From NCBI RefSeq assembly GCF_006345805.1, contig NC_043011.1, positions 11,408,001 to 11,472,000 of the forward strand: 64,000 bases of DNA, written 5' to 3'. This document shows positions 11,161-64,000 of the stretch, piece by piece; positions within the stretch are counted from its first letter, which is position 1; every line of letters begins with the position of its first letter. The position numbers and the translations under genes are program-made. Under the pieces are notes generated by a model, which searched no databases, was not told the origin of the DNA, and was given only the letters and a program-made list of their open reading frames with translations. Origin of the DNA: Octopus sinensis. Its lineage: Eukaryota.

Positions 11161-11164
11161 CCAG

Positions 11165-14265: not shown

Positions 14266-14276
14266 CAAGTTGTTAC

Positions 14277-14668
14277 GTGGCTATGTGGTAAGTAGCTTGC
14301 TAACCAGCCACACGGTTCCGGGTTCAGTCCCACTGCGTGGCATCTTGGGCAAGTGTCTTCTGCTATAGCCTCGGGCCAACCAAAGCCTCGTGAGTGGATT
14401 TGGTAGACGGAAACTGAAAGAAGCCTGTCATATATATGTATGTGTGTGTGTGTGTGTATGTTTGTGTTTGTCCCCCTAGCATTGCTTGACAACCGATGCT
14501 GGCGTGTTTACGTCCCCATCACTTAGCGGTTCGGCAAAAGAGACCGATAGAATAAGTACTGGGCTTACAAAGAATAAGCCCCAGGGTCGATTTGCTCGAC
14601 TAAAAGGTGGTGCTCCAGCATGGCTGCAGTCAAATGACTGAAACAAGTAAAAGAGTAAAAGAGAGAGT
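14277..14668 (+). mobile_element. tRNA-derived SINE family A
   Basis: A-box-like TGGCTATGTGGT, B-box GGTTCAGTCC, central (TA/TG)n tract, 3' CAGTCAAATGACTG stem and (GTAAAAGA)n tail. 13 copies in the window. Confidence 0.9.
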
Positions 14669-14899
14669 ATTTGCATTAAGAGCCCATCTCCCACAACCAT
14701 GTAATGCTGTAGTTCATACACAAGCATCATGCAATCTACCTTTCATTCTGAGAGAGAGATTTTGTTGTCAACAGAAGAAATAGCTCTCTGAATTTTCTTC
14801 ATCTTATTCTAGCATTTGCACAAAAATTCTTGTCAAAATTCCAGAGAAAATGGAATGCTCCCACACTGCTATAGTGTGGGGTAGCCATATATGCATTTC

Positions 14900-15270
14900 T
14901 CCATCTTATTCTAGAAACTATGCTTTCAGCACATTCTCCTCCACTGCTTGTTAGGTCACCTAAATAACAGAAACTATTATGTGAGAAAGTCTACTTCCTG
15001 TATATCCTAAGTATTTATAGCTCCTGAGCATCTTCCACATACAAAACATCTACAAACATTTTCTCTGTTAACCTTCCTGTGATTCCACTGCACCTCTTGT
15101 GTGTCTATAGATTGCTTTCAGTACATTATATGGAATTCCTGCCTACACCTTTCCTACATGATAAGGAAGGCAATTTTCCTGAGGGAGATCAGTCCTGTCT
15201 GTTTTCTTGCTTTAGTCTAAGTTAACTGTAAGACCCTTTGATTCCAGGTTTTTCTTCCATATCTGGAAAT
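14900..15270 (-). mobile_element. Old RTE fragment (Cys-rich insert region)
   Basis: Visible similarity to 31430-31780. Confidence 0.55.
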
Positions 15271-15610
15271 TAAAAAAAAATTCTATTACAGATCCTACTG
15301 TGAAAATGTGATCATCAGCATATAGTAGTTCCGAAGGGCAGCCAGTCTAAATTACTCCGTATGAAGACAAACAAACAACTAGTGCACTCCTACATGTACA
15401 CTAAATCCAGCACTGTACTCATGGATGAATCTTACCTTACTAACAACACCTCTATACATGTATGGCTTGCACAAGCTATTTGTCTACCCATAGTTTCCTC
15501 AGAGACCAGACCACAGAGCGAGGGGTTATTGAAGGCTTTCTCCAGGCCAATGAATGCTGAGTACAAAGGTTTAATTTCAGTTAAATACTTCTGCAGTTAT
15601 CTTACTGGAT

Positions 15611-15991
15611 GGAAGCACTCTGTCGGTTCCGACAACAAGGGTTCCAGTTGATCCGATCAACGGAACAGCCTGCTCATGAAATTAACGTGTAAGTGGCTGA
15701 GCACTCCACAGACACGTGTACCCTTAACGTAGTTCTCGGGGATATTCAGCGTGACACAGAGAGTGACAAGGCCGGCCCTTTGAAATACAGGTACAACAGA
15801 AACAGGAAGTAAGAGTAAGAGAAAGTTGTGGTGAAAGAGTACAGCAGGGATCGCCACCATCCCCTGCCGGAGCCTCATGGAGCTTTAGGTGTTTTTGCTC
15901 AATAAACACTCACAACGCCCAGTCTGGGAATCGAAACCGCAATCCTACGACTGCGAGTCCGCTGCCCTAACCACTGGGCCATTGCACCTCC
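15611..15991 (-). mobile_element. tRNA-derived SINE family B
   Basis: Head GGAGGTGCAATGGCCCAGTGGTTAGGGCAGCGGACTCG...TTCGATTCCC. Near-identical copy at 48931-49314. Confidence 0.88.
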
Positions 15992-20120: not shown

Positions 20121-20727
20121 GGATCTTTACCTTTTGACAGCAGATTTAAAAAATAATTTTTTGTAACTAAACACTTTCAAACTTCGGACACTGGTAGAAT
20201 GTGTCATATAAAATATCTTTTACTCTTAGCGTTTTTGAGAAAAGCTTATGTTTAAGAAGTTATTTCACGTTAAAGTTGTCATCTTTCAGTAATTTCAACC
20301 AATCAATGACATGTATTCAGTTGAATAAAATTACTGCTGTTGTTTGTCAACAAGAACTTCCGGCGGCGTATATTTCGTTTGTCACTGTTATTTATGATAA
20401 ATCCTAACCCTAACACTTAAAACCCTAACCCTAAAACCTTAAAGCTAAAACCAGTACAAACGTATGAACGATGTCATAAATAACAGTGACAAACGAAATA
20501 TACACCACCGATAGTTGTTGACAAACAATGGTATTAATTTCATTCAGCTGAATACACGTCATTGATTGGTTGAAATTAACAAAATACGACAACTTTAACG
20601 TGAAATAACTTTGTAACGCTAAGAGTAAAATATATTTTATATGACACATTCTACCAGTGTCCAAAGTTTGAAGGTGCTTAGTTACAAAAATTATTTTTTA
20701 AATATGTCGGTCAAAAGGTAAAGATCC
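20121..20727. mobile_element. Foldback/MITE with ~270-bp imperfect inverted arms, GGATCTTT termini and a CCCTAA-containing centre
   Basis: Left arm ggatctttaccttttgac... matches the reverse complement of the right arm ...gtcaaaaggtaaagatcc. Confidence 0.88.
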
Positions 20728-23639: not shown

Positions 23640-26150
23640 AAGCAGGTTTTGTTTCCTCATAACTTACAGAAAGCAAAAGGTGAAGGCAGGTGAGGAAACA
23701 ACAAACAGGGAAGAATGGAAAAGTCTTCGACGTATATAAAATTCACAGTCCTTCGACCTGTGACTAGTTTGACCATCACAGTTTGAGGGAACTTCGTTTT
23801 CATGATGTCCATGCTATTGCAGTTTCCAAAGAGCTTTGAGCAGCAGTCATGAGGTTGGCATTTTGATACTTGGCTCAAATCATCATGATACAGATAAATC
23901 TCCAATATTTAGATGGCTCCCAGTCCTCCATGTCAGCTAACTGTTTCTCAATCACAACTTTAATCTTTATGCTCTCCAATGCCATTGTTTGCTCACCAAT
24001 ACATCAAGCTGTTTCTGAAAAAAAGGAGACATAAAAAAAATCAAGTTTAGCCTGAGCACCCTGTATGTGTGTGTGTATGATGATGATTGCTTCATCTTGA
24101 GAGATGATAGCCATTCCATCAACACACACACCACACCCCCATCGCACAGCACAATCACTCTGTTGATGAGCCCTCAGATGACTTTTAAGATCAGCTGCTG
24201 ACTGACAGGGTTTAAAACACAAGTGACGGATATTATTTAAGTTTCTTCTATATCTTTGCCCTTTGGAATCTGATTCTGAAGGAATGTTTTTGTGAACTGG
24301 CATATGCCTTTTTAAGTCCAGGTATTGTCTTACAAGTTTTTTGACATATGACACAAGTTGTAAGAGGCGGTTGGTGTCCAAGATTATTAACTACCTGGGC
24401 ATTTTGATTTTCATGTGACTTCATATGATTCATGTATCCTACTTTTGAAAACAGAACAATCACATACAATACATGTCCAATGTTCACTGTTGATTACAGT
24501 TCTAACTGTTCCTCTGTGACTGGCCCTTTTAAGCTCAGAGTGCTGAATCATCTTTTCTTCCCAAGCATTACAACCAGTCCTAACAGTGCCTCTCCATGTG
24601 TTCCAATCTAGAACATCATTTTCCAAATCACTTTTGTTCATATCTAGTTTCTTTAGGTTTTCCTTCACACAGTCTTTTTACCTTTATCTTTGGCTTATGT
24701 TGTGGTTGCTTACCAGAGTTGAGCTTGCCATAAAAAAGATGCTTTGGCAATCACTTGTCTTTCATTCTAATAACATGTCCAGTCTATCTCATTTGAGCCA
24801 AGATAACATGTTGTTCAATAGAGCTACAATTGAGCCAAGATAACATGTTGTGCGATTGAGCTACAATTGAGCCAAGATAACATGTTGTTCGATTGAGCTA
24901 CAATTGAGCCAAGATAACATGTGCGATTGAGCTACAATTGAGCCAAGATAACATGTTGTTCAATAGAGCTACAATTGAGCCAAGATTACATGTTGTTCGA
25001 TTGAGCTACAATTGAGCCAAGATTACATGTTGTTCAATAGAGCTACAATTGAGCCAAAATAACATGTTGTGCGATTGAGCTACAATGTGCCATGTGCAAA
25101 ACTGTCTCTGGTATGAAACATTCCCACTTGACTCCTAAGATATGTCTGAGGCATTCTTGATGAAATCTCTCTGGCATTTTTATATGACACTTGCAAGTGG
25201 TCTGTGTCTCACTTTAATAAAGAAGTGCAGTCAATACACATGCTCTATAAACATTGATTTTTGTCTGCAGGGAAATACCTCTTTCCACCCATACTCGCTT
25301 TTCAAGCTTTCCTAATGCAACACTTCCCCATTCGATAGTATATCTCTTCATCAAGACTACCATCTCTTGACAGTGTGTTTCCTAGGTAAACAAAGGTGTC
25401 AACAACTTCTAACCTTGTTCCATTCACAAAAATGTTTAGTTCAGAATATGTTTGTCCTGGTGTGGGAGTAAACATTTGGTTAGTCCGAATTGTACATATG
25501 CAGTGGAAAATCTATCCATTATTTGCCAACGAATCAGCATAAAGTAATTCTCTTACAAGTGCTTTGAAAGTCTTTGCTTTGCAGTTAAATCTGGTCAAAT
25601 TAAAAATGCGACCAGGTGTCTGAAATCTAATTCCGATTACCCTGTTGCAATCTTTGAAAGCATACCAAAGCAATGCAGCAAAATGAATAGAGAAAAGTGC
25701 AGGGTCAGGAATATCTCCGTTTCACACTGTTGTCCTCTAAAAATTCATGAGATAGCTCACCACTAAAGGCTACCCAAGCTTTTATGTTTCTGTATAGTTC
25801 CTTAAAGATGCTCACGAAATGTGTTGGGCAACCAAGTTTACACAAAACAATCCACAGTGCCTCCCTTAGTTAAATCTATGAAGAACTGGTATAGTAGCGT
25901 TTATTCCTCTAAGCATTTCTGAACCTGCCTCAGAAAATATTGTGTCCATTGTTCCTCGTTCAGGTCTGAAACCACACTGCTCTTCAGGAATCACCTGTGA
26001 ACACACATTCTCAAGACGGTGTAACATGATCCTTGAAAGTATTTTCCTGGTACGTGCCAGGACAAATATCCCTCTAGAATTACCATACACTGCTTTTGGG
26101 CCCTTACCCTTGTATATAGAGATTAGAATGTCATTTATCCATAGTCCGGG
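23640..26150 (-). mobile_element. Decayed RTE (BovB-like) LINE with C-terminal C2H2 fingers
   Basis: YGNSRGI..ILSRIMLHRL..IPEEQCGFRPERGTMDTIF, LEVVDTFVYLG, SIEQHVILAQMR*TGHVIRM, WRGTVRTG. Confidence 0.85.
24792..25087. repeat. 37-bp minisatellite (GAGCTACAATTGAGCCAAGATAACATGTTGTTCAATA), about 8 copies, inside the RTE ORF
   Basis: Unit starts at 24821, 24858, 24895, ~24929, 24966, 25003, 25040, 25077. Confidence 0.93.
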
Positions 26151-26589
26151 TAGTTTTGATGAACAAGTAATACTTATTATACTATTTTTACTATTTTTAT
26201 TAATTTTCTTTGATTCATGAGGCTTAAATAATTCCTGTATTTTTCATTAATGAATTCCTTTTACTCATTTTCATTAATAATTTTATTCTATTTTTCCACG
26301 CAATGTCTCCACGAGTTTTATTTCTTATAAACGCTAAGAACTATTCTTTACGTTTATAATCTAGTGATACTTTCTCAACTAACTAAGCAACGTTGTATTG
26401 TTTTGGGATTAATATTTAGCTGTTGTTAATTTTGTTATTGATTTATTAATAGGGGTCTGTAGGTTGTAGCTGAGTGTCTTCATGGTAGTTTCTCCATAAG
26501 TTGTGTTTTTTTCTCACATTTCTTTAGTTCATGAGGCTTAAATGTTTTTTCGTTTTTTTCGTATTTTTCATTTTATTTTTATTTCTATT

Positions 26590-29697: not shown

Positions 29698-29851
29698 ATC
29701 ATCATCATCATCATCATTTAGCGTCCACTTTCCATGCTAGCATGGGTTGGACGGTTCAACTGGGGTCTGGGAAGCCAGAAGGCTGCACCAGGCCCAGTCT
29801 GATCTCGCAATGTTTCTATGGCTGGATGCCCTTCCTAACGCCAACCACTCC
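29698..29851 (-). mobile_element. RTE 3' tail fragment with (GAT)n tail
   Basis: (CAT)n-ttt..cgtcc..ccatgctagcatgggttgg...ggatgcccttcctaacgccaaccactcc, the same as 30170-30330. Confidence 0.88.
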
Positions 29852-30169: not shown

Positions 30170-33100
30170 TTTATCATCATCATCATCATTGTTTAACGTC
30201 TGTTCTCCATGCTAGCATGGGTTGGACGGTTCGACCGGGGATCTGGGAAGCCAGAAGGCTGCACCAGGCTCCAGTCTTATCTGGCAATGTTTCTACAGCT
30301 GGATGCCCTTCCTAACGCCAACCACTCCGTGAGTGTAGTGGGTGCTTTTTACGTGCCACCTGCACAGGTGCCAGGTGAGGCTGGCAACGGCCACGGTCGG
30401 ATTGGTGTATTTTATGTGCCACCGGCATGGAAGCCAGTCGAGGCGGCGCTGGCATCGGCCACGAGTCGGATAGTGCTTTTTACGTACCACCAGACCAGGG
30501 ATCCTGGCTGGTTCAATTCGATTTCGATTTCCCCAACATGTCTTCGCAAGCAAAGGGGTTTGGCATGGGTGCCTGTCGTACGGTTGGATTGGTGTATTTT
30601 ACGTGCCACTGGCACGGAAGCCAGTGGAGGCGGCGCTGGCATCGGCCACGAGTCGGATAGTGCTTTTTACGTACCACCAGACCAGGGATCCTGGCTGGTT
30701 CAGTTCGATTTTGATTTCGCTTTTGCTTTCGCTTGCCCCAACATGTCTTCGCAAGCAGAGGGGGTTGGCATGGGTGCCTGTCGTCGGATGAGGTTCTATA
30801 TCGACTTCGCTTGCCTCAACAGGTCTTTGTGGCCAAGGGAGGAAAGGCATTCATAAGTGGGCTGGGCTCACTTGTCCTGCCTGGTCTTCTCACGTACAGC
30901 ATATTTCCAAAGGTCTCGGTCGCTGGTCATTTCCTCAGTGAGGCCTAAAGTTCGAAGGTCGTGCTTCACCACCTCGTCCCAGGTTTTCCTGGGTCTACCT
31001 CTTCCACGGGTTCCCTCAACTGCTAGGGATTGGCACTTTTTCACACACCTATCTTCATCCATTCTCACCACATGACCATACCAGCGCAATCGTCTCTCTT
31101 GCACACCACAACTGATGCTCCTTAGGTCCAACATTTCTCTCAGGGTACTAACACTCTGTCGAGCATGCACACTGACATTACACATCCATCGGAGCATACT
31201 GGCTTCATTTCTCGCGAGCTTACGCATGTCCTCAGCAGTCACGGCCCATGTTTCACTGCCATGTAGCATGGCTGTTTGTACACATGCATCATACAGTCTG
31301 CCTTTTACTCTGAGCGAGAGGCCTTTAGTCACCAACAGAGGTAAGAGCTCCCTAAACTTTGCCCAGGCTATTCTTACTCTAGCCGTTACACTTTCAGCAC
31401 ACCCACCCCCACTACTAACTTGGTCACCAAGATAATGGAAGCTATCAACTACTTCTAGTTTTTCCCCCTGGAAAGTGACGGAAGTTGTTTTCTGCAGATT
31501 TTCAGAGGTTAATGCTCCCGAGCATCTGCCACATACAAAAACCATCTTCCTAGTTAGCCTTCCTATGACATTGCTGCACCTCTTATGTGTCCATAGCTTA
31601 CACTTGGTGCATCTTATAGAGTTTCTACCTACACCTTTTCTACAGATCGAGCAGGGCCATCTACCTGAAGGCGTTTGTGATTTGTCTACCTTCCTACTTA
31701 TTACGACTTTGGTTTTAGCTAGATTGACTCTAAGGCCCTTCGATTCTAAACCTTGCTTCCACACCTGAAACTTCTTCTCCAGTTCTGATAGTGACTCAGC
31801 AATTAGAGCAAGGTCATCAGCATAGAGGTGCTCCCAGGGGCATCTTGTCTTGAATTTCTCCGTTATTGCCTGGAGGACTATGATAAATAGGCGGGGGCTG
31901 AGGACTGAGCCTTGGTGGACCCCAACCTCTACCCTGAATTCTTCACTGTACTCATTGCCAACCCTCACCTTACTAGCAGCGTCCCTGTACATGGCTTGCA
32001 CAGCTCTCACTAACCATTCATCTATTCCTAGTTTCCCCATTGACCACCAGATGAGTGATCGGGGGACCCTGTCGAAGGCTTTCTCCATGTCAACAAAAGC
32101 CAGGTACAGGGGCTTATCTTTGGCTAGGTATTTCTCCTGCAGCTGCCTTACCAGGAATATAGCATCAGTGGTACTTTTCCCTGGCACGAACCCAAACTGC
32201 ATCTCATCTAAACTAACTCTCTCTCTAATTAGTTGGCTTATGACCCTCTCTGTAACCTTCATCACCTGATCCAACAGCTTGATACCTCTGTAATTATTTG
32301 TATCTAGGGCATCACCTTTACCTTTGTAGCAGTTGACTATTATGCTGCTACACCAGTCATTGGGTATGACTTCTTCATGTATCATCTGATTAACTATACG
32401 GGTGACTAGGCTATAGCCGACACTACCAGATATTTTGAGCATCTCTGCAGTGATACCTGATGGGCCTGGGGCTTTCCCTGTCTTCATGCTTCTAATTGCC
32501 TTAGCTACCAAGGAACTATCAACCCTGATAGCTGGTCCCTCTGTTGGGTCAACGTTCGGCAGACTCTCTTTATCCCATTCATTTTCTTTATTCAGCAACC
32601 TTTCATAGTGGCGTCTCCAAGCCTCTCTCTTTGCATCCTCGTTTAGCGCAAGTGAACCATCTTCCATGCGAACACACTTCTCTCCTACCACATCACAATT
32701 CTCTCTCACACACTGTCTTGCAACGCGAAACACCTCCAGTCTTTGGTCCTCACGGCGCAGAACATTGGCAAATTTTTTCTTATCTGCTTCCCCTCTGGCT
32801 AGATAGACCTGTCTCCTAGCTTCCCTTTTAGCAGTCTGATACAATTCCCTGCTACCACTATTCTTCCAGTGCTTCCAAGTCTGTCTCTTTTCTCTAATAG
32901 CCCTGTCTACAACACTGTTCCACCACCACGTTACCTTGGGACGAGAGGGGACTTTGCACCAGCCACAGATCTGGTCAGTGGCTCTCAGCAGGTTGTCCCT
33001 TAGAAACATCCAGTTGCCCTCTACTCCATGTGATACTCTATCCCCTTCTACTTCGTCAAAGGCTTCAAGTAGCATGTCTCTAAATCTCTGTCCATTCGCA

Positions 33101-33660
33101 GGATCTTTAAGCTTCCAGATCCTTCTTCTCCATGTTGGTCGTCTTCTGGTTGTTCTCCTAGTCCTGATCCTAAAGTCACTAACTACCAGTCTATGTTGTG
33201 GGGTACATTCTTCGCCTGGGAAGGTTTTGGCATTTATAAGTAGCCATCTCTCCCTTTGCCTGGCAAGGATGTAGTCAATTTGGCTGGTATGTTGGCCCGA
33301 TCGGTAGGTGACTAGGTGGCTGGTAGGTTTCCTGAAGTTAGTGTTGCAAATCATAAGATTATTTGCATCATAGAACTCCAGCAGCCTGGTTCCCTCCTCG
33401 TTGCGGGAACCAAAGCCATAGCCTCCATGTACGCCATGGAAGCCCCCAGCATGTCGTCCAACGTGACCATTGAAGTCACCAGACACAAAGAGAAGGTCTC
33501 TGTCGTTCGTCAACGAGGTAGTCTGCAGTAGAGTGTCATAGAATCGGTCTTTCTGTCCATCAGTTAGCCCTGACTGAGGAGCATAGGCTGATATAATGGT
33601 TGCTAAACTATGATGAAGCGCTAATCTAATCTTAAGTATTCTGTCGCATACTCTGATTAC
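30170..33660 (-). mobile_element. Young RTE-clade LINE, 5'-truncated within the APE domain, uninterrupted ORF and full 3' UTR
   Basis: ORF 30868-33513 (881 aa) extends upstream to ~33655 (..ATIISAYAPQSG). Motifs GDFNGHVG, QIDYIL, GKAPGPSGI, NYRGIKLL, QFGFVPG, DMEKAFD, GVHQGSVLSP, YADDL. (GAT)n tail at ~30172-30190. Confidence 0.97.
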
Positions 33661-36477: not shown

Positions 36478-37518
36478 CCCTTTCGTTACCAAACCGCCCG
36501 AAAAAAATTTTGGTTAATGAGAATATCAGAGTAAATCTCTTTAGAACATTCGTGAAAACACGTATTATACTTCGTAAACAGTTCAACTACAGTTTTGTAC
36601 AAAAATCGAAGTGTAATTTTAATTCCGTGAATTATGGGAGATTTTTTTCCGAAATTTGTTCCTATTGTGTTTTCAAAATTTGTAATTCTGACAAAAAATG
36701 GATACGAATTTCATTATATCAAGCAGCGAGTCAGAATTCGAAGGATTTTCTACTGAAGACCTTCATAAATCTAACTCTATGACTGAAAAAAAAAAGCATG
36801 TGGTATTTGATAATGAATCTGATGTTTCATTTTCCGAAAGTGAAAACAGTGAATCTGAGATCTCCGACAGCGATAAAGAAAATGATTTGGCACCTGAATG
36901 GAGTGAAAATTTAAAAACTGTTTCTTTCGGTGATTTCTCTGAAGAAACTGGACCAAGCCACAGACTTTCCCAGAAGAGTAAAGCCTTAGACTATTTCTTT
37001 TTACTTTTTCGAATGAGCCTATTTGAAATCATTACGGCGGAAACGAACTGTTACGCTCAACCTAAACAAAGCGAAAGAAACGATAGTTTGTTATTTCCCA
37101 CAACCTTAAATGAAATTAAGGCCTATTTTGCCATAAATATTATTATGGGTATTAGAAAGTTACCCAGAATAACAAATTCTATCGTAAAATTTTGTTGTAT
37201 ACCCAATTGAATATTAGCTAATAACCCATTTTCTATAGCGATGTTTGAACAAAATTTTAATAATTTTATATATTGTTGAATTTACCTGTATCTACCTGCA
37301 ATTAGAGTCACTTTGTGACAAAAATTATAGTATAGAATTGGTTGAGAACATTTCACTAAATTATCTTCCAAAAATCAGATTAATATATCTCTTATTATAA
37401 TTCATAAATAAAAAAGTTATAGTTGTTTAATGAAACCAGACTAAATTTATGATTACATTAGAAATTAATTGAAACACATAAGGGGTGTATTTTGGTCATA
37501 AATATAGTAACGAAAGGG
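36478..37518 (+). mobile_element. Internally deleted piggyBac transposon with transposase N-terminal fragment
   Basis: TTAA|CCCTTTCGTTAC...GTAACGAAAGGG|TTAA. ORF 36698-37210 has an acidic N-terminus then YFFLLF...IITAETNCYA...TTLNEIKAYFAINIIMGIRKLP (PGBD-type). Confidence 0.92.
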
Positions 37519-40865: not shown

Positions 40866-41367
40866 CAGTAAAGCGAGTAGCCACATCAAAGTAGCAGTAA
40901 ATGTTACTACTAGTTTAACCCCAGGCGGATTCTCCGCCAGTTGATTTTCGGTGCAAGCTCTTCAGGGGAGGCAAACCCCTACTACCCTCCAGTAGGGGTT
41001 CAATCCCCCTACTAGCAATCATCATCGTCGTTTAGCATCCGCTTTCCATGCTGGCATGGGTTGGACGGTTCTACTGGGGTCTGGGAAGCCAGAAGGCTGC
41101 ACCAGGCCCAGTCTGATCTCGCAATGTTTCTACGGCTGGATGCCCTTCCTAACGCCAACCACTCCATGAGTGTAGTGGGTACTTTTTACGTGCCACCGGC
41201 ACAGGTGCCAGACGAGGCTGGCAAACGGCCACGATCGGATGGTGCTTTTTACGTGCCACCGGCAGGGTGCAGAGCTTTCACTGAAAACCAGTAGGCAGAG
41301 AGTCTGCCTGGGGTTAAGCTAGTAGTAACATTCATCTGTTACTTTGATGTGGCTACTCGCTTTACTG
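40866..41367. mobile_element. Palindromic MITE (~110-bp arms, CAGTAAAGCGAG termini) carrying an inserted RTE tail
   Basis: cagtaaagcgagtagccacatcaaagt... versus ...actttgatgtggctactcgctttactg. Confidence 0.8.
41018..41264 (-). mobile_element. RTE 3' tail fragment containing ~1.3 copies of the 63-bp satellite monomer
   Basis: tttttacgtgccaccggca occurs at 41183 and 41246, exactly 63 bp apart. Confidence 0.92.
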
Positions 41368-43427: not shown

Positions 43428-43589
43428 GAAATGGTATATTCAATTATCTGTTGACTGTCATCTGTGGTTGGGCTGTATCCAGTGATGCAATAGAGATTAT
43501 GTCTCTTTCCTATGTGTTACCCTCTACAACATGTGACTTCAACATTTCTGAGTATTATGTTGCTATCCTCAACGCTTCAATGTTTGTTG
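43428..43589 (+). CDS. SV2: SV2/SVOP-like MFS transporter, exon 3
   Basis: ttttcag|GA...; (G)NGIFNYLLTVICGWAVSSDAIEIMSLSYVLPSTTCDFNISEYYVAILNASMFV(G), donor G|gtaagt, phase 1/1. Confidence 0.95.
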
Positions 43590-44110: not shown

Positions 44111-44199
44111 TTGTAGATATTTGTTACTTTAATATAATCTGTCTTGTGGTTAAGCTATGCATATGCAGATAAGTATTAATAAATAACACTACTCATTCA

Positions 44200-45210
44200 A
44201 AGTGGTGGTGGAACAATGTAGTTGACAGAGCCATTTGGGAAAAGAAACAAGCATGGAAGGACTGGAAGTGTGGTGGTAGCAGGGAACTGTATCAGATTGT
44301 CAGAAGGGGAGCTAGGAGACGGGTTTACTTAGCCAGAGCGGAAGCAGATTAGAAGAAATTTGCCAATGTTCTGTGTCGTGAAGACGAGAGACTTGAAGTA
44401 TTTCAAATTGCAAGACAGTGTGTGAGAGAAAACCACGATGTCATAGGAGAGAAATGTGTCCGCATGGATGATGGTACATTTGCATTTAATGATGCTGCAC
44501 CAGAGAGACTTGGAGGCACCTCTATGAAAGGTTGCTAAATGAAGAGAATGAATGGGAGAAAGTGAATTTGCCAAATGGTGACCCAACTAAGGGACCAGCT
44601 ATCTAAATTGACAGTACTTTGGCAGATAAAGTAATGAAGGTCATGAAGACAAGGAAAGCCCTGGCCCATCAGGAATCACTGCTGAGATGCTTAAAATATC
44701 TGGCAGTGTAGGCTATAGTCTAGTCAACTGTTTCGAAGGTAAAGGTGATGCCTTAGAAATAATTACAGAAGTATCAATTTGTTGGATCAGGTGATGTAAG
44801 ACATGGAGAGGGTCATAGCCCAACTAATTAGGGAGAAAGTTAGTCTAGATGAGATGCAGTTCGGGTTTGTACCAGGGAGAAGCAACGCTGATGCTATATT
44901 TCTGGTAAGACAGCTGTAGGAGAAATTCCTAGCCAAAGATAAACCACTTGTAGTTGGCTTTTGTTGACATAGAGAAAGCCTTTGACAAGATTCCCCAATC
45001 AATTATCTGGTGGTCAATGTGGAAACTAGGGATAGATGAGTGGTTGGTGAAAGCTGTACAAGCCATGTACAGGGATGCTGTCAGTAAGGTGAGGATTGGC
45101 AACGAGAATAGCAAAAATTCCAGGTACAAGTAGGGGTACATCAAGGATCAGTCCTCAGTCTCCTCTTGTTCATCATAATCCTCCAAGCAATGACAGAGGA
45201 ATTCAATTCT
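44200..45210 (+). mobile_element. Degenerate RTE internal fragment
   Basis: Aligns to 31850-32930 in the opposite orientation, with deletions and stops. Confidence 0.85.
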
Positions 45211-46655: not shown

Positions 46656-46689
<34 letters not shown>

Positions 46690-46860: not shown

Positions 46861-46964
46861 CACCTAGTAACACGCAAGATAGGAAAAAGAAAACAAAACA
46901 GCCCCTTTAACTAAGGTAGGGTGAGGAGTATCTGAGAGGGGCGGTAACTTTATGCTAAGTACAG

Positions 46965-47640
46965 ATGTGTTGCTATGGAGAAAATACATGGCTACCCCGT
47001 ATTATATAAGGATAGGTGGTTATAACTGGAAAGAAGATGAAGAAGGGGTGCTGGAGCAAATCCTTAAGGCACAAGAAGATGAGCATAGGAGAGGATACAG
47101 ATAGGGGTTCAAGGGGTAGTTTCATAAGAGTGGGAGGGGAGAGTCACAGATGGTTGGAGTTGTGGGTAGAGGTGAATGTAGTGAGTGATGAACAAACATG
47201 GAGTTGTGGATGATGGGAGTATCAGTATAGGAGAGTAGTAAGATTAGAGAGATAGAAGTGGATCAGGGAGGATAGATCAGGATAATCTGCTTGGTGTAGG
47301 AGCAGTGGGTAGGGAGATGTAGAGGTACATAAGGGTGGATAAGACATGATGGCAAATATGAGATGATGTTGATGATGATAGAAAATATGAAAGGCCTTAA
47401 AGATGAAGTATAGCAGAAGAGAATGAGAAATAACTGAAGGCACAGAGACAAGGTAATCAGTGAAAATCATATGGGAAGGAATGACAATGAGAATGAGATA
47501 TGGAAGAGGTTTCAGAGCAGGAGATAACTGGTAGGACAAAGAACAAATAGGGGCGGGGATATAATATGTGCTGTTTCTACTCTCAAGGGATTACAACAGC
47601 TGGGTAGATTTAAAAATATTAACGAAGGTGAGGGAAGGTG
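46965..47640 (-). mobile_element. Decayed Penelope-like relic, second copy
   Basis: Homologous to 12560-13640. Broken frame reads SYAHLL(R)LK(R)ICS...(R)G*P. Confidence 0.45.
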
Positions 47641-47727
47641 ATCAGGTAGGTACTTTACAATATCTGACTTTGCATTTTCAAGAGAAGATCATGCTTTGGC
47701 ATGTATTAGTCTTCTATAAAAGTAAAT

Positions 47728-48032
47728 CATCATCATCATCATCATCGTTTAACGTCCGTTTTCCGTGCTAGCACGGGTTGGACGGTTCAACCGGGGTCTG
47801 GGAAGCCAGGAGGCTGCACCAGGCTCCAGTCTGATCTGGCAGTGTTTCTACAGCTGGATGCCCTTCCTAACGCCAACCACTCCGTGAGTGTAGTGGGTGC
47901 TTTTTATGTGCCTGGGGAGGCTGGCAGCGGCCACGATCAGTTAGTGCTTTTTATGTGCCACCGACACCAAAGCCAGTCAAGGCGGTGCTGGCATCGGCCA
48001 CGTTCGGATGGTGCTTTTTACGTGCCACCGGC
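47728..48032 (-). mobile_element. RTE 3' tail fragment with three copies of the gtgcttttta(c/t)gtgcc monomer core
   Basis: Core motif at ~47897, ~47944 and ~48011. Confidence 0.88.
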
Positions 48033-48148
48033 AGCGAAGCCAGATAGAAATACATTAGAAAAGAATAAGAAAGCTCCCAATAAAATTGGATATAGATATA
48101 AAAATAAAATCAACAATGATATAAAATGATATAAAAATAAAATCAACA

Positions 48149-52725: not shown

Positions 52726-52847
52726 AGTTGGTGGCAGCGTTCCTGTTGTATTTTCCTATTTTATTGAATTCCAACCAAAGAAGCGCCGTGGTGCTATGGT
52801 TTCTCTATTAGCTTCATTTTGGATGAGTGGCACAATAGTGGCTGCTG
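52726..52847 (+). CDS. SV2: SV2/SVOP-like MFS transporter, exon 5
   Basis: ctgtcag|A GTT...; (G)VGGSVPVVFSYFIEFQPKKRRGAMVSLLASFWMSGTIVAA(G), donor G|gtgagt. Typical Y..E..P...RG motif. Confidence 0.97.
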
Positions 52848-52990
52848 GTGAGTTTCATTTGGTTCTGTTGACTTTTCATCAAATTTTTTGATTATGATTA
52901 TGCTGCCTTGTTACAATTATAATATATGAAGCTTATGATAAAGATAATACTAATAATAATAATAATGTTCATAGTAAGAATTAGCTACAT

Positions 52991-54000: not shown

Positions 54001-54379
54001 TCCAAAAGAAATAAAGGGGATCTGAATACCGTGGAATTTTCTGTGTAGCAGAATTAAATCCATCAGTATGAGACAAAATTTTAAAACTTACTAGATTACC
54101 TGTGTGTTGTTATGTATATGTACATGCATCAATGCATATGCATACATCTGTTTTTGTATGTACACATTCATACATCTTTCACACACACACACACGCACAC
54201 ACACATTCACACACCTTTCTTGCTATGATATAAATTGATTACCAAAGAGTATAGATGGAGTTAGTGATTACAAAATAATATAGTTAGGATTAATGACATT
54301 GAGAAATATGCTATTGGACACCTTAGCTTAGCAACACATTGACAACCTCAGCACAACAGTTTCAGATATAAATGACATA

Positions 54380-54557
54380 ATCATCATCATCATCATCATC
54401 ATCATCGTTTAACGTCCATTCTCCATGCTACCATGGGTTGAACGGTTCGACCGAGGATCTGGGAAGCCAGAAGGCTGCAGCAGGCTCCAGTCTGATCTGG
54501 CAATGTTTCTACGGCTGGATGCCCTTCCTAACGCCAAGCACTGCGTGAGTGTAGTGG
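54380..54557 (-). mobile_element. RTE 3' terminus with (GAT)n tail that leads directly into the satellite
   Basis: Nearly identical to 30172-30340. Confidence 0.95.
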
Positions 54558-57500
54558 GTGCTTTTTACGTGCCACCGGCACAGGTGCCAGGCGATGCTGG
54601 CAGACGGCCACGATCGAATGGTGCTTTTTACGTGCCACCGGAACGGGGGCCAGGCGAGGCTGGCAAATGGCCATGATCGGATGGTGCTTTTTACGTGCCA
54701 ACGGCACGGGGGCCAGTCGAGGCTGGCAAACGGCCACGATCGGATGGTGCTTTTTACATGCCACCAGTACTGGGGCCAGGCGAGGCTGGCAAACGGCCAT
54801 AAGCGGATGGTGCTTTTTACATGCCACCGGCACTGGGGCCAGGCGATGCTGGCAGACGGCCACGATCGGATGGTGCTTTTTACGTGCCACCGGCACGGGG
54901 GCCAGGCGGGGCTGGCAAATGGCCACGATCGGATGGTGCTTTTTACGTGCCAGGCGAGGCTGGCAAACGCCCATGATCGGATGGTGCTTTTTACGTGCCA
55001 CCGGCACTGGGGCCAGGCGAAACTGGCAAATGGCCACGATCGGATGGTGCTTTTTACGTGCCAACGGCACGGGGGCCAGGCGAGGCTGGCAAACGGCCAC
55101 GATCGGATGGTGCTTTTTACATGCCACCAGTACTGGGGCCAGGCGAGGCTGGCAAACGGCCATAAGCGGATGGTGCTTTTTACATGCCACCGGCACTGGG
55201 GCCAGGCGATGCTGGCAGACGGCCACGATCGGATGGTGCTTTTTACGTGCCACCGGCACGGGGGCCAGGCGGGGCTGGCAAATGGCCACGATCGGATGGT
55301 GCTTTTTACGTGCCAGGCGAGGCTGGCAAACGCCCATGATCGGATGGTGCAAACGCCCATGATCGGCCAGGCGAGGCTGGCAAACGGCCACGGTCGGATG
55401 GTGCTTTTTACGTGCCACCGGCACTGGGGCCAGGCGTGGCTGGCAAATGGCCACGATCGGATGGTGCAATTTACGTGCCAACGGCACGGGGGCCAGGCGA
55501 GGTGGCAAACCGGCACGATCGGATGGTGCTTTTTACGTGCCACCAGCACTGGGGCTAGGCGAGGCTGGCAAACAGCCATGATCGGATGGTTCTTTTTACG
55601 TGCCACCGGCACAAGGGGCAGGCGTGGTCTACAAACGGCCATGATCGGATGGTGCCTTTTACGTGCCACCGGCACTGGGGCCATGTCAGACTGGCAAACG
55701 GCCATGATCAGATGGTGCTTTTTACGTGCCACCGGCACGGCGGCCAGGAAAGGCTGGCAAACGGCCACGATCGGATGGTGCTTTTTACGTGCCACCGGCA
55801 CTGGGGCCAGGCGAGACTGGCAAACGGCCATGATCGGATGGTGCTGTTTACGTGCCACCGGCACAAGGGGCAGGTGTGGCCTACAAACGGCGATGATCGG
55901 ATGGTGCCTTTTACGTGCCACCGGCACTGGGGCCGCCGGCTCTGGGGCCGTATCAGACTGGCAAACGGCCATGATCAGATGGTGCTTTTTACGTGCCACC
56001 GGCACGGGGGCCAGGCAAGGCTGGCAAACGGCCACGATCGGATGGTGCTTTTTACGTGCCACCAGCACGGGGGCCAGGAGAGGCTGGCAAACGGCCACGA
56101 TCGGATGGTGCTTTTTATGTGCCAACGGCACTGGGGACAGGCGGGGCTGGCAAACAGCCACGATCGGATGGTGCTTTTTACGTGCCACCTGCACTGGGGC
56201 CGGGCGAGGCTGGCAAACGGCCACAATCGGATGGTGCTTTTTACATGCCACCGGCACGAGGGCCAGGTGACGCTAGCATACGGCCAAGATCGGATGGTGC
56301 TTTTTACGTTCCACCGGCACGGCGGCCAGGCGAGGCTGGCAAACGGCCACGATCGGATGGTGCTTTTTACGTGCCACCGGCACTGGGTCCTGGCGAGGCT
56401 GGCAAATGGCCACGATCGGATGGTGCTTTTTACGTGCCAACGGCATGGCGGCCAGGCGAGGCTGGCAAACGGCCATGATCGGATGGTGCTTTTTACGTGC
56501 CACCGGCACTGGGTCCTGGCGAGGCTGGCAAATGGCCACGATCGGATGGTGCTTTTTACGTGCCAACGGCATGGGGGCCAGGCGAGGTGGCAAACGGCCA
56601 CGATCTGATGGTGCTTTTTACGTGCCAGCAGCCCTGGGGCCAGGGGAGGCTGGCAAACGGCCATCATCGGATGGTGCTTTTTATGTGCCACCGGCACTGG
56701 GGCCGGGCGTGGTTGGCAAACGGCCACGATCGGATGGTGCTTTTTACGTGCCACCGGCACTGGGGCCAGGCGTGGTTGGCAAACGGCCACGATCGGATGG
56801 TGCTTTTTACGTGCCACCGGCGAAGGGGGCCAGGCGAGGCTGGCAAACGGCCACGATCGGATGGTGCTTTTTACATGCCACTGGCACTGCAGCCAGGCGA
56901 GGCTGGCAAATGGCCATGATCGGATTGTGCTTTTTACGTGCCACGGGCACGGGTGCCAGGCGAGGCTGGCAAACGGCCACGATCGGATGGTGCCTTTTAT
57001 GTGCCACCGGCACTGGGGCCAGGCTAGGCTGGCAAACGGCCACGATCGGATGGTGCTTTTTACGTGCCACTGGCACGGGGGCCAGGCGAGACTAGCAAAC
57101 GGCCAAGATCGGATTGTGCTTTTTACCTGCCACCGGCACGGCGGCCAGGCGAGGCTGGCAAACGGCCACGATCGGATGGTGCTTTTTACGTGCCACCGGC
57201 ACTGGGGCCAAGTGAGGCTGGCAAACGGCCATGATCGTATGGTTCTTTATACGTGCCACCAGCACTGGGGCCAGGCTAGGCTGGCAAACGGCCACGATCG
57301 GATGGTGCATTTTATGCGCCAACGGCACTGGGGCCAGGCGAGGTTGGCAAACGGCCACGATCAGATGGTGGTTTTTACGTGCCACCGGCACTGGGGCCAG
57401 CGGGGGCTTACAAACAGCCACGATCGGATGGTGCTTTTTACGTGCCACCTGCACAGGTTCCAGGCGAGGCTGGCAAACAGCCACGATCGAATGGTGCTTT

Positions 57501-60500
57501 TTACGTCCCACCGGCATGGGGGCCAGGCGAGGCTGGCAAACGGCCACGATCGGTGCTTTTTACGTCCCACCGGCACGGGGGCCAGGCGAGGGTGGCAAAC
57601 GGCCACGATCGGATGGTGCTTTTTACATCCCACTGGCACTGGGGCCAGGCGAGGCTGGCAAATGGCCATGATCGGATAGTGCTTTTTACGTGCCACCGGC
57701 ACGGGGGCCAAGAGAGACTGGCAAACGGTCACGATCGGATGGTGCTTTTTATGTGCCACTGGCACTGGGGCCAGGCGAGGCTGGCAAACGGCCACGATCG
57801 GATGGTGATTTTTACGTGCCACCAGCATGGCGGCCAGGCGAGGCTGGCAAACGGCCACGATCAGATGGTGCTTTTTACGTGCCACCGGCACGGGCCAGAC
57901 GAGGCTGGCAAACGGCCTTGATCGGATGGTGCTATTTACATGCCACCGGCATTGTGGCCAGGTGAGGCTGGCAGACGGCCACGATCGGATGGTGCTTTTT
58001 ACGTGCCACCGGCACTGGGACCAGGTGAGGCTGGCAAACGGCCACGGTCGGATGGTACTTTTTACGTGCCACTGGCACTGGGGCCAGGTGAGGCTGGCAA
58101 ACGGCCACGATCGGATGGTGCTTTTTACGTCCACTGGCACTGGGGCCAGGCGAGGCTGGCAAACGGCCATGATCGGATGGTGCTTTTTACGTGCCGCCGG
58201 CACAGGTGCCAGGCGAGGCTGGAAAACGGCCATGATCGGAGGGTGCTTTTTACGTGCGACCAGCACGGCTGCCAGGCGAGGCTGGCAAACGGCCACGATC
58301 AGATGGTGCTTTTTACGTGCCACCGGCACGGGGGCCAGGCGAGGCTGCCAAACGGCCACGATCGGATGGTGCTTTTTACATGCCACTGGCACTGCAGCCA
58401 GGCGAGGCTGGCAAATGGCCATGATCGGATGGTGCTGTTTACGTGCCACCGGCACGGGTGCCAGGCGAGGCTGGCAAACGGCCACGATCGGATGGTGCTT
58501 TTTATGTGCCGCCGGCACTGGGGCCAGGCGAGGCTGGCAAATGGCCACGATCGGATGGTGCTTTTCACGTGCCACCGGCACGGGGGCCAGGCGAGGCTAT
58601 CAAACGGCCAAGATCGGATGGTGCTTTTTACGTGCCACCGGCACGGGGGCCAGGCGAGACTGGCAAACGGCCACGATCGGATGGTGCTTTTTATGTGCCA
58701 CCGGCACTGGGGCCAGGGGAGGCTGGCAAACGGCCACGATCGGATGGTGATTTTTACGTGCCACCAGCACGGCGGCCAGGCGAGACTGGCAAACGGCCAC
58801 GATCGGATGGTGCTTTTTACGTGCCACTGCACGGGGGCCAGGCGAGGCTGGCAAACGGCCACGATCGGATGGTGATTTTTACGTGCCACCAGCATGGCGG
58901 CCAGGCGAGGCTGGCAAACGGCCACGATCAGATGGTGCTTTTTACGTGCCACCGGCACGGGCCAGACGAGGCTGGCAAACGGGCTTGATCGGATGGTGCT
59001 ATTTACATGCCACCGGCATTGTGGCCAGGTGAGGCTGGCAGACGGCCACGATCGGATGGTGCTTTTTACGTGCCACCGGCACTGGGACCAGGTAAGGCTG
59101 GCAAACGGCCACGATCGGATGGTACTTTTTACGTGCCACTGGCACTGGGGCCAGGTGAGGCTGGCAAACGGCCACGATCGGATGGTGCTTTTTACGTCCA
59201 CTGGCACTGGGGCCAGGCGAGGCTGGCAAACGGCCATGATCGGATGGTGCTTTTTACGTGCCGCCGGCACAGGTGCCAGGCGAGGCTGGAAAACGGCCAT
59301 GATCGGAGGGTGCTTTTTACGTGCGACCAGCACGGGGGCCAGGCGAGGCTGCCAAACGGCCACGATCGGATGGTGCTTTTTACATGCCACTGGCACTGCA
59401 GCCAGGCGAGGCTGGCAAATGGCCATGATCGGATGGTGCTCTTTACGTGCCACCGGCACTGATGCCAGGCGAGGCTGGCAAACGGCCACGATCGGATGGT
59501 GCTTTTTATGTGCCACCGGCACTGGGGCCAGGCGAGGCTGGCAAATGGCCACGATCGGATGGTGCTTTTTACGTTCCACCGGCACGGGGGCCAGGCGAGG
59601 CTATCAAACGGCCAAGATCGGATGGTGCTTTTTACGTGCCACCGGCACGGCGGCCAGGTGAGGCTGGCAAACGGCCATGATCGGATGGTGCATTTTATGC
59701 GCCAACGGCACTGGGGCCAGGCTAGGTTGGCAAACGGCCACGATCAGATGATGCTTTTTATGTGCCACAGGCACGGGGGCCAGGCGAGGCTGGCAAACGG
59801 CCATGATCGGATGGTGCTTTTTATGTGCCACCGGCACTGGGGCCAGGCGAGGCTGGCAAATGGCCACGATCGGATGGTGCTTTTCACGTGCCACCGGCAC
59901 GGGGGCCAGGCGAGGCTATCAAACGGCCAAGATCGGATGGTGCATTTTACGTGCCACCTGCACAGGTGCCAGGCGAGGCTGGCAAACAGCCACGATCGGA
60001 TGGTGCTTTTTACGTCCCACCGGCATGGGGGCCGGGCGAGGCTGGAAAACGGCCACGATCGGATGGTGCTGTTTACGTACCACCGGCACTGGGGCCAGGC
60101 TGGGCTGGCAAACAGCCACGATTGGATGGTGCTTTTTACGTCCCACTGGCACAGGTGCCAGGCGAGGCTGGCAAATGGCCACGATTGGATGGTGCTTTTT
60201 ATGTCCCACCGGCACGGGGGCCGGGCGAGGCTGGCAAACGGCCACGATCGGATGGTGCTTTTTACGTTCCACCGGCACTGGGGCCAGGTGAGGCTGGCAA
60301 ATGGCCATGATAGGTGGTGCTTTTTACGTGCCAACGGCACTGGGGCCAGGCGAGCCTGGCAAACGGCCACGATCGGATGGTGCTTTTTATGTGCCAAAGG
60401 CACTGCGGCCAGGCGAGGTTGGCAAACGGCCACGATCGGATGGTGCTTTTTACATCCCACTGGCACTGGGGCCAGGCGAGGCTGGCAAATGGCCATCATC

Positions 60501-63500
60501 GGATGGTGCTTTTTACGTGCCACCGGCACGGGGGCCAGGCGAGACTGGCAAACGGCCACGATCGGATGGTGCTTTTTATGTGCCACCGGCACTGGGGCCA
60601 GGGGAGGCTGGCAAACGGCCACGATCGGATGGTGATTTTTACGTGCCACCAGCACGGCGGCCAGGCGAGGCTGGCAAACGGCCACGATCGGATGGTGCTT
60701 GTTACGTGCCACTGCACGGGGGCCAGGCGAGGCTGGCAAACGGCCACGATCGGAAGTTGCTTTTTACGTGCCACCGGCACGGGGGCCAGGCGGGGCTGGC
60801 AAACGGCCATGATCAGATGGTGTTTTTTTAATGTGCCACCGGCACGGCGGCCGGGCGAGGCTGGCAAACGGCCATGATCGGATGGTGCTTTTTACATGCC
60901 ACCAGCACTGGGGCCAGGCTAGGCTGGCAAACGGCCACGATCAGATGATGCTTTTTACGTGCCACAGGCACGGGGGCCAAGCGAGGCTGGCAAACGGCCA
61001 TGATCGGATGGTGCTTTTTATGTGCCACCAGCACTGGGGCCAGGCGAGGCTGGCAAACGGCCCCGATCGGATGGTGCTTTTTACGTGCCACCGGCACTGG
61101 GGCCTGGCGAGGCTGGCAAACGGCCACGATCTGATGGTGCTTTTTACGTGCCAGCAGCCCTGGGGCCAGGCGAGGCTGGGAAACGGCCATCATCGGATGG
61201 TGCTTTTTATGTGCCACCGGCACTGATGCCAGGCGACGCTGGCATACGGCCACGATTGGATGGTGCCTTTTACGTGCCACCGGCACTGGGGCCACGCTAG
61301 GCTGGCAAACGGTCACGATCGGATGGTGCTATTTATGTGCCACCGGCACTGGGGCCAGGCGTGGTTGGTAAACCGCCACGATCGGATGGTGCTTTTTACG
61401 TGCCACCGGCAAAGGGGGCCAGGCGAGGCTGGCAAACGCCCACGATCGGATGGTGCTTTTTACATGCCACTGGCACTGCAGCCAGGCGAGGCTGGCAAAT
61501 GGCCATGATCGGATGGTGCTTTTTACGTCCCACCGGCACGGGTGCCAGGCGAGGCTGGCAAACGGCCACGATCGGATGGTGCTTTATATGTGCCACCGGC
61601 ACTGGGGCCAGGCGAGGCTGGCAAACGGCCACGATCGGATGGTGCTTTTTACGTGCCACCGGCACGAGGCCCAGGCGAGGCTGGCAAACGGCCACGATCG
61701 GATGGTGCTTTTTACGTGCCACCGGCATTGTGGCCAGGTGACGCTGGCAGACGGCCACGATCGGATGGTGCTTTTCACGTGCCACCGGCATGGTGGCTAG
61801 GCGAGGCTGGCAAACGGCCACGATCGGATGGTGCTTTTTACGTGCCACCGGCACTGGGGCCAGGTGAAGCTGGCAAATGGCCATGATCGGATGGTGCTTT
61901 TTACGTGCCACCAGCACTGGGGCCAGGCTAGGCTGGCAAACGGCCACGATCGGATGGTGCATTTTATGCGCCAACGGCGCTGGGGCCAGGCGAGGTTGGC
62001 AAACGGCCACGATCAGATGGTGCTTTTTACGTGCCACCGGCACTGGGGCCAGCCGGGGCTTACAAACAGCCACGATCGGATGGTGCTTTTTACGTGCCAC
62101 CTGCACAGGTGCCAGGTGAGGCTGGCAAACAGCCACGTTCGGATGGTGCTTTTTACGTCCCACCGGCACGGGGGCCGGGCGAGGCTGGAAAACGGCCACG
62201 ATCGGATGGTGCTTTTTACGTGCCACCGGCACTGGGGCCAAGCGGGGCTGGCAAACAGCCACGATCGGATGGTGCTTTTTACGTCCCACCGGCACAGGTG
62301 CCAGGCGAGGCTGGCAAACGGCCACGATCGGATGGTGCTTTTTATGTCCCACCGGCACGGGGGCCGGGCGAGGCTGGCAAACGGCCACGATCGGATGGTG
62401 CTTTTTACGTGCCACCGGCACTGGGGCCAGGTGAAACTGGCAAACGGCCATGATCGGATGGTGCCGTTTACGTGCCGCCGGCACAAGGGGCAGGTGTGGC
62501 CTACAAACGGCGATCATCGGATGGTGCCTTTTACGTGCCACCGGCACGTGGGCCGGGCGAGGCTGGCAAACGGCCACGATCGGATGGTGCTTTTTACGTT
62601 CCACCGGCACTGGGGCCAGGTGAGGCTGGCAAATGGCCATGATCGGTGGTGCTTTTTACGTGCCACCGGCACTGGGGCCAGGCGAGGCTGGCAAACGGCC
62701 ACGATCGGATGGTGTTTGTTACGTGCCACTGCACGGGGGCCAGGCGAGGCTGGCAAACGGCCACGATCGGAAGTTGCTTTTTACGTGCCACCGGCACGGG
62801 GGCCAGGCGGGGCTGGCAAACGGCCATGATCAGATGGTGGTTTTTATGTGCCACCGGCATGGCGGCCGGGCGAGGCTGGCAAACGGCCATGATCGGATGG
62901 TGCTTTTTACATGCCACCAGCACTGGGGCCAGGCTAGGCTGGCAAACGGCCACGATCGGATGGTGCATTTTATGCGCCAACGGCACTGGGGCCAGGCTAG
63001 GTTGGCAAACGGCCACGATCAGATGATGCTTTTTACGTGCCACAGGCACGGGGGCCAAGCGAGGCTGGCAAACGGCCATGATCGGATGGTGCTTTTTATG
63101 TGCCACCAGCACTGGGGCCAGGCGAGGCTGGCAAACGGCCCCGATCGGATGGTGCTTTTTACGTGCCACCGGCACTGGGGCCTGGCGAGGCTGGCAAATG
63201 GCCACGATCGGATGGTGCTTTTTACGTGCCAACGGCATGGGGGCCAGGCGAGGTGGCAAACGGCCACGATCTGATGGTGCTTTTTACGTGCCAGCAGCCC
63301 TGGGGCCAGGCGAGGCTGGGAAACGGCCATCATCGGATGGTGCTTTTTACGTGCCACCGGCACTGATGCCAGGCGACGCTGGCATACGGCCACGATTGGA
63401 TGGTGCCTTTTACGTGCCACCGGCACGGGGGCCAGGGGAGGCTGGCAGACGGCCACGATCGGATGGTGCTTTTTACGTGCCACCGGCACTGGGGCCACGC

Positions 63501-64000
63501 TAGGCTGGCAAACGGTCACGATCGGATGGTGCTATTTATGTCCCACCGGCACTGGGGCCAGGCGTGGTTGGTAAACCGCCACGATCGGATGGTGCTTTTT
63601 ACGTGCCACCGGCAAAGGGGGCCAGGCGAGGCTGGCAAACGCCCACGATCGGATGGTGCTTTTTACATGCCACTGGCACTGCAGCCAGGCGAGGCTGGCA
63701 AATGGCCATGATCGGATGGTGCTTTTTACGTCCCACCGGCACGGGTGCCAGGCGAGGCTGGCAAACGGCCACGATCGGATGGTGCTTTATATGTGCCACC
63801 GGCACTGGGGCCAGGCGAGGCTGGCAAACGGCCACGATCGGATGGTGCTTTTTACGTGCCACCGGCACGGGGCCCAGGCGAGGCTGGCAAACGGCCACGA
63901 TCGGATGGTGCTTTTTACGTGCCACCGGCATTGTGGCCAGGTGAGGCTGGCAGACGGCCACGATCGGATGGTGCTTTTCACGTGCCACCGGCATGGTGGC
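54558..64000. repeat. 63-bp GC/CpG-rich satellite array, about 150 monomers, open at the window end
   Basis: Consensus GGTGCTTTTTACGTGCCACCGGCAC(G/T)GGGGCCAGGCGAGGCTGGCAAACGGCCACGATCGGAT. Copy number estimated as 9443/63. Confidence 0.98.

Follow-up and report, generated by a model that had tools for sequence, protein, structure and literature searches.

A 63-bp tandem array joined to the 3' terminus of an RTE-like LINE in an intron of a candidate SV2-like gene of Octopus sinensis

Examination of a 64,000-bp stretch of the Octopus sinensis genome (NCBI RefSeq assembly GCF_006345805.1, contig NC_043011.1, positions 11,408,001 to 11,472,000, forward strand; hereafter the window) revealed a tandem array of 63-bp units that begins at the 3' terminus of an RTE-like long interspersed nuclear element (LINE), within an intron of a candidate SV2-like gene. 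The RTE family to which this element belongs carries an unstable tandem block in its 3' untranslated region (3' UTR), and the array is likely to represent one type of unit from that block, the A unit, expanded in place after the element had entered the intron. Coordinates are those of the window, and the features discussed are collected in Table 1.

Junction and composition of the array

On the forward strand, the minus-strand (ATG)n end of the element is read as a (CAT)n run, which is followed by a conserved 150-bp tail and then, from position 54557, by the first 63-bp unit. This is the very point at which other copies of the tail begin their first unit, and the junction is therefore in register, as had been claimed in an earlier note on this DNA, made from the sequence alone, which placed the start of the array at the RTE 3' terminus. 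The tail was matched by blastn at 29698, 30173, 41018 and 47726 with 88-93% identity, and more distant versions of it were found at 33757 and 46657. Against a consensus built from 21 tails, the one adjoining the array shows 92.3% identity. The array is thus flanked on one side by an RTE tail in register, and its other side lies beyond the end of the window. All seven RTE-type tails of the window (29698, 30173, 33757, 41018, 46657, 47726 and 54376) point the same way and lie antisense to the SV2-like gene.

The order of units within the 3' UTR was read from the reference copy, in which the tail is followed on the forward strand by unit A (30341-30403, 63 bp), unit B (30404-30472, 69 bp), and then unit C with unique sequence; beyond C, a 187-bp duplication yields the units B' and C' before the stop codon of the open reading frame (ORF) is reached. 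Across the family, A units measure 63 bp and B units 67-69 bp. When the array consensus was compared with the units of RTE copies, its identity was 89-94% for A, 76% for B and about 40% for C, and the array is therefore made up of A-type monomers only. The derivation of the monomer from the 3' UTR of the element, proposed in the earlier note, can be traced in this way to the A unit.

Tandem Repeats Finder (TRF) detected a period of 63 bp over 54557-63993, split into three rows (6.3, 5.8 and 136.9 copies) that have 86-89% matches, the longest of them scoring 12659. Segmentation with a 63-mer consensus produced 150 consecutive monomers, in agreement with the approximately 150 motifs counted previously; 128 of them are exactly 63 bp long, and the lengths of the others are 48, 54, 60-62, 64, 65 and 78 bp. 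As the array is still continuing at the end of the window (64000), it is at least 9.44 kb long and contains at least 150 units. Its GC content is 0.62, whereas the remainder of the window has about 0.31-0.50. The first monomer is of the A1 type (the CACAGGTGCC variant), the type that distinguishes the unit nearest the tail in dispersed RTE copies, while most later monomers carry an A2 signature (CTGGGG in 59 and CGGGGG in 30); the signature CAGGTG was found in seven monomers of the array in total.

The monomers have a mean identity of 92.3% to their own consensus and of 86.4% to each other. Irregular duplicated blocks of 5-9 monomers each, with 92-99.7% identity, cover 99 of the 150 monomers. 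The commonest changes are C-to-T and G-to-A, and the variation at CpG positions is 2.3 times that at the other positions of the array. A regular higher-order repeat was considered and rejected because the mean identity between monomers is flat (0.86-0.877) at all offsets, the only duplicated blocks being the irregular ones. We also discarded the idea that a special secondary structure of the unit or the tail serves as a recognition signal or drives slippage, their folding energies being equal to those of shuffled sequences (z = 0.0-0.4). A scan of the window against Rfam returned no family above threshold.

Copies of the 3' UTR inside the window

The dispersed copies of the 3' UTR listed in the earlier note (29698, 30340-30680, 41018 and 47728) were all recovered by blastn. 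Their interpretation as intermediate stages in the growth of a variable number tandem repeat (VNTR) had to be abandoned: they are instead 5'-truncated copies, collinear with a fixed tail-A-B-C order, that differ in their point of truncation. The copy at 29698 ends inside the tail and contains no unit at all. The copy at 41018, which aligns to UTR positions 7-258, consists of the tail and 1.4 units, slightly more than the approximately 1.3 reported before, and its A unit is indeed close to the array consensus (94% identity). The copy at 47726 aligns to UTR positions 1-319, and its three motifs are an A unit shortened to 48 bp by a 15-bp deletion, a B unit and a partial C unit. Likewise, the stretch 30340-30680 has one motif from each of the five units A, B, C, B' and C'. 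The three and about five diverged motifs that had been taken for additional copies of one repeat are in both cases units of other types. A preferred point of 5' truncation at GCCACCGGCA was also examined and dropped, as only two of about seven truncated copies end there. The copy at 41018-41267 sits within a short element (40900-41330) whose inverted-repeat ends, aatgttactactagtttaaccccagg and cctggggttaagctagtagtaacatt, give it the appearance of a miniature inverted-repeat transposable element.

A variable tandem block in copies outside the window

Variation in the number of A units was found in copies from outside the window. A 143-aa C-terminal query retrieved a fragment with 93% identity from a metagenome contig (L037) as well as P0130, a protein of Octopus vulgaris (locus L038). 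When protein representatives were searched with an ORF from the array, six O. vulgaris 'hypothetical predicted proteins' were obtained (CAI9741473.1, CAI9744441.1, CAI9739301.1, CAI9742642.1, CAI9741885.1 and CAI9717111.1), and the loci of five of them were fetched (L041-L045). Each of the six is the translation of a stretch that runs across RTE tails and units of 63-69 bp, and all are probably annotation artefacts; the RTE repeat would then be a generator of spurious ORFs, responsible for at least these six entries. The longest annotated O. vulgaris ORF across such units has 221 aa. The sampled O. vulgaris sequence amounts to about 140 kb in six regions. Partial 3' copies of the RTE element are very numerous, with about one per 5-16 kb of the sequence sampled. 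Together, the window, the O. vulgaris loci and the metagenome contig provided 22 copies with a complete tail end.

Among the copies that reach B, the A block consists of a single unit in eight, two of which have the 48-bp deletion variant, and of two, three and four units in L044:10018, L037 and L043:10057, respectively. In copies that are truncated within the block, it amounts to 4.1 units in L045:17852, 5.3 in L041:9847, and 1.8 and 1.4 in others. At L042:9795 a single A unit is kept, and it is a 134-bp dimer of B that is repeated 4.9 times (97% matches), with A and C on its flanks. Real intermediates in A-block number therefore occur outside the window, in O. vulgaris and metagenome copies. 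The suggestion that the LINE family carries a VNTR seed is borne out, on evidence other than that first given for it, by the A block of 1-5.3 units across the 22 copies and by the expanded B dimer of L042.

The order A1 then A2 seen in the array is shared by L043:10057, L044:10018 and L045:17852, and the A2 units of the last of these match the A2 type of the array consensus over 90-94% of its length. The copies with three (L037) and four (L043:10057) A units still adjoin ORF sequence, from which it follows that the block is carried by the elements and transmitted through retrotransposition. Among copies that retain ORF sequence, complete A blocks reach four units at most.

The 48-bp variant of A, in which the 15 bp separating two GTGCC direct repeats are missing, is present inside the array (54935-54982 and 55298-55345) and in several independent RTE copies, both in the window (47896-47943) and in O. 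vulgaris (L041:18897, L045:10037 and L045:19727); it is either a marker of a subfamily or a recurrent slippage deletion. A contig found in several Logan runs (L046-L049; SRR11869384, SRR11869385, SRR11869391 and SRR11869394) contains B-like units with 71-78% identity. A search for a 19-nt motif in metagenome and prokaryote-genome collections returned only single chance matches, with no homology to the tail or the units.

The element and its clade

The reference 3' UTR belongs to a near-full-length RTE-like copy on the minus strand (30173-33513). Its 881-aa ORF matches Pfam RVT_1 at 1e-30, with weak matches to Exo_endo_phos_2 and to a PHD/C1-like finger, and begins within the endonuclease domain, which means that 5' truncation has affected this copy. 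Homologues in the databases have a length of about 1050 aa, contain PF03372 and PF00078, often together with PF00628, and are found on contigs of 3.1-4.4 kb; when the full-length 881-aa ORF was used as the query, the best match was only 54% identical. The element is a compact LINE whose single ORF codes for an endonuclease of the apurinic type and, after it, a reverse transcriptase, the absence of an ORF1 being deduced from element size only.

The 3' end of the element is (ATG)n and not poly(A), in window copies (29698, 30173, 47726 and 54376) as well as in O. vulgaris (L041 and L042), and the tail domain can be aligned across 21 copies. With about 610-700 bp, the 3' UTR departs from the very short 3' UTR that is a classical trait of RTE elements. 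This trait is not a strict one, since an O. vulgaris element placed in the RTE clade by phylogeny has a 3' UTR of about 600 nt, largely a repeat (PMC9115989). The LINE thus appears to fit the RTE clade, to which it was assigned by its ORF layout, size and (ATG)n end; none of the database homologues retrieved bears a clade name. Four further fragments of related LINE ORFs were noticed in the window, at 11162-12430 (+), 13702-15623 (-), 25145-26153 (-) and 44161-45210 (+). Their amino-acid identity to the 881-aa ORF is 31-76% per aligned piece, and none has the same 3' UTR.

Origin and growth of the array

The expansion in place that we favour would have started from an octopus RTE-like LINE in whose 3' UTR a short and unstable tandem block separates the ORF stop from the 150-nt terminal domain with its (ATG)n end. 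One copy of this element would have been inserted antisense in the SV2-like intron, presumably through target-primed reverse transcription, and its A block at that time probably consisted of a few units already, A1 followed by A2, like that of some O. vulgaris copies. The block would then have grown in place to at least 150 units, likely by repeated unequal exchange or by replication-slippage duplication of segments of 5-9 monomers, and the monomers would have decayed since, mainly by CpG transitions. Because the monomers and the adjoining tail are both 92.3% identical to their respective consensus, an expansion of roughly the same age as the insertion, to which later segmental duplications were added, fits the data. 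We infer that the array arose as a side effect of repeat instability and has no function of its own.

Several points weigh against this scenario. No array of 6-149 units was found in the approximately 140 kb of O. vulgaris sequence sampled, and the Logan contig L046, from another species, has about five diverged B-like units with the tail absent where it would be expected. The array leaves the window before its far end is reached, where B, C, the ORF or a point of truncation should follow on this scenario. The comparison covers the window and the sampled loci, so that long arrays without a tail may exist elsewhere, and both the length and the reality of the array are read from assembled sequence, which may mislead.

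A single locus does not reveal the direction of derivation, and an older 63-bp satellite could have been captured into the RTE 3' UTR, in which case this locus would be the original array adjoining an RTE tail, and the tail-less array of B-like units just mentioned speaks for this. We hold such an origin to be very improbable. In the subfamilies sampled, the A-B-C order is fixed, and a related motif is present even in the more distant tail family at 46657; moreover, A and B differ by about 24%, which is more than the array monomers differ among themselves. The junction is in register and is led by the tail-proximal A1 variant, and inspection of the sequence to the left of the tail disclosed no array. 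The ORF-bearing copies with several A units, and the variation of their number within a subfamily (3 in L037, 5.3 in L041), also bring to mind a long array that was already present in the RNA of the source element and was retrotransposed whole. This would require 9.4 kb of repeat, more than 2.5 times the whole element, in a family whose homologues fit their ORFs of about 1050 aa on contigs of 3.1-4.4 kb and in which no complete A block of an ORF-bearing copy exceeds four units; block duplications of very different ages (92-99.7%) point rather to stepwise growth in place, and retrotransposition of the whole array seems to us extremely unlikely.

Finally, tandem arrays are difficult to assemble, and the window stops within this one, so the array could be real and its length or internal order nevertheless the product of an assembler expansion or mis-join. 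We regard this as improbable: the monomers differ pairwise by 14%, private variants are numerous, indels give irregular monomer lengths of 48-78 bp, decay is biased towards CpG, and exact periodic reuse of blocks is absent except for a few near-identical segments of 5-9 monomers. The divergence of the monomers, the CpG decay and the irregular block duplications, as read from the assembled bases, argue for an old, genuine array rather than for assembly stutter.

Relation to known satellites

Satellites derived from retrotransposon 3' UTRs are already established, and the octopus array is a clear case of this class, not an unprecedented one. Short arrays (1-5.3 A units, or the B dimer repeated 4.9 times) are present in 21 other copies alongside one array of at least 150 units, which is the pattern by which satellites derived from transposable elements are recognised. 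The closest parallel in plants is provided by Ogre long terminal repeat (LTR) elements, whose 3'-UTR tandem repeats gave rise to PisTR-A of Pisum and to nine satellites of Lathyrus sativus (PMC7004042, PMC9659126). In both systems, short arrays in the 3' untranslated region of dispersed copies were occasionally expanded to long ones; the Ogre satellites, however, stem from plant LTR elements and expanded chiefly in centromeric regions, whereas the octopus element is an animal, non-LTR, RTE-like one and the sole expansion seen is intronic.

Satellites linked to LINE 3' ends include the common cetacean satellite (L1 3' UTR), the chicken HinfI satellite (CR1) and 18HT of Drosophila (HeT-A/TART 3' UTR) (PMC9659126, table 1). 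Their monomer, like that of the octopus array, has its homologue in the non-coding 3' part of a LINE. As tabulated, these cases link a monomer to a region; in octopus, by contrast, the 63-bp unit is already tandem within the LINE and the array is still joined to the LINE terminus. RTE retrotransposons have also been described as progenitors of microsatellite families in Lepidoptera (PMC2887409). The LINE clade appears to be the same as here, and in both cases frequent retrotransposition of 3' partial copies spreads the repeat while slippage alters its number; the Lepidoptera repeats are simple-sequence units from an extremely short 3' UTR, unlike the octopus minisatellite with its 63-bp unit, its UTR of about 600-700 bp and its array of more than 9 kb.

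In octopus itself, the element RTE-2_OV of O. vulgaris has a 3' UTR of about 600 nt, most of which is a repeat (termed 'microsatellite') that prevented specific PCR (PMC9115989), and the sequences of the elements of that study are unreported according to PMC13282606. RTE-2_OV resembles our element, as far as its description goes, in being an octopus RTE with a repeat-rich 3' UTR of some 600 nt; an expansion into an array is not described for it. In the SVA (SINE-VNTR-Alu) elements of hominids, a central VNTR of at most a few kb varies in copy number between copies. SVA is likewise a retrotransposon with an internal VNTR (PMC3287187). Unlike the octopus LINE, it is a composite, non-autonomous element mobilised by L1. 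Our search of the literature found neither a report on cephalopod satellite DNA nor a description of the 63-bp repeat.

The locus offers an unusually legible view of the start of a satellite-like array, with a progenitor unit, its fixed place in the UTR, small variants in copy number among other copies, and an expansion to 150 units that has remained joined to the end of the LINE. The RTE elements of octopus attract attention at present, as their expression in the brain has been reported. A more far-reaching possibility, which we put forward tentatively and think rather unlikely, is that active RTE subfamilies of octopus have a heritable 3'-UTR minisatellite whose unit number changes at or after retrotransposition, and that their numerous 3' partial copies seed kb-scale, GC-rich arrays throughout the genome, introns of neuronal genes included. 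If so, the RTE element would be a main source of satellite-like DNA in octopus genomes.

Host gene and other features of the window

The SV2-like identity of the host gene, suggested in the earlier note, gained support from two candidate exon peptides, translated from plus-strand ORFs, that are collinear with SV2A and SV2B. The joined peptides match SV2A/SV2B structures with a whole-sequence E of about 3e-11. The match is carried mainly by the second peptide (i-Evalue 1.5e-07), which also matches Pfam Sugar_tr slightly below the cut-off; the first corresponds to residues 26-80 of SV2A and is marginal by itself (i-Evalue 1), yet stands in collinear order. A search with the SV2 exon peptides, aimed at extending the locus or reaching orthologous introns, gave no match. 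The RTE copy and the array are antisense to this candidate gene. Transcription or splicing could be affected by more than 9 kb of GC-rich repeat in an SV2-like intron, an effect that is purely conjectural.

Table 1. Features of the window related to the array, the RTE-like element and the candidate host gene
Feature	Position	Strand	Evidence
RTE copy 5'-truncated within the tail	29698..29851	-	blastn, sequence
Reference 3' UTR: tail, A, B, C and unique sequence, 187-bp duplication (B', C')	30173..30867	-	Sequence, self-hits, unit alignment
881-aa ORF: partial endonuclease, reverse transcriptase, PHD-like finger; 5'-truncated LINE	30868..33513	-	ORF list, Pfam, homologues
RTE copy 5'-truncated after 1.4 A units	41018..41267	-	blastn, unit comparison
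Candidate SV2-like exon upstream of the array (approximate limits)	43439..43588	+	ORF scan; weak SV2A stretch
RTE copy: 48-bp A, B, partial C, then truncated	47726..48045	-	Sequence, self-hits, unit comparison, variant counts
Candidate SV2-like exon directly upstream of the array-bearing intron (approximate limits)	52730..52849	+	ORF scan; Sugar_tr; SV2A/SV2B
(ATG)n 3' tail of RTE-like element, (CAT)n on the + strand	54376..54406	-	TRF, sequence; same kind of tail in other window and O. vulgaris copies
Conserved 150-bp 3' terminal domain of RTE-like element	54407..54556	-	blastn 88-93%; 92.3% to 21-tail consensus
First monomer, A1 type (CACAGGTGCC)	54557..54619	-	Sequence, unit comparison, variant counts
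149 further 63-bp monomers, mostly A2 (CTGGGG or CGGGGG)	54620..64000	-	TRF, segmentation, identity, block duplications, CpG decay

Several other repeats were noticed in the window. A purine-rich dispersed repeat has one copy at 12568-13520 and another at about 46900-47560. The former includes an 18-bp unit (TGATGGCAGGTATGTGAT) repeated 20 times at 13013-13373, of which the latter apparently has only a remnant, and this repeat may be a second element of the window with an internal tandem expansion. A 37-bp repeat is present in eight copies at 24793-25086, alternatively scored as two copies of a 145-bp period, and a short interstitial telomere-like (AACCCT)n tract at 20399-20452. A 170-aa ORF at 36698-37210 resembles, by eye, the N-terminal part of a piggyBac-type transposase.

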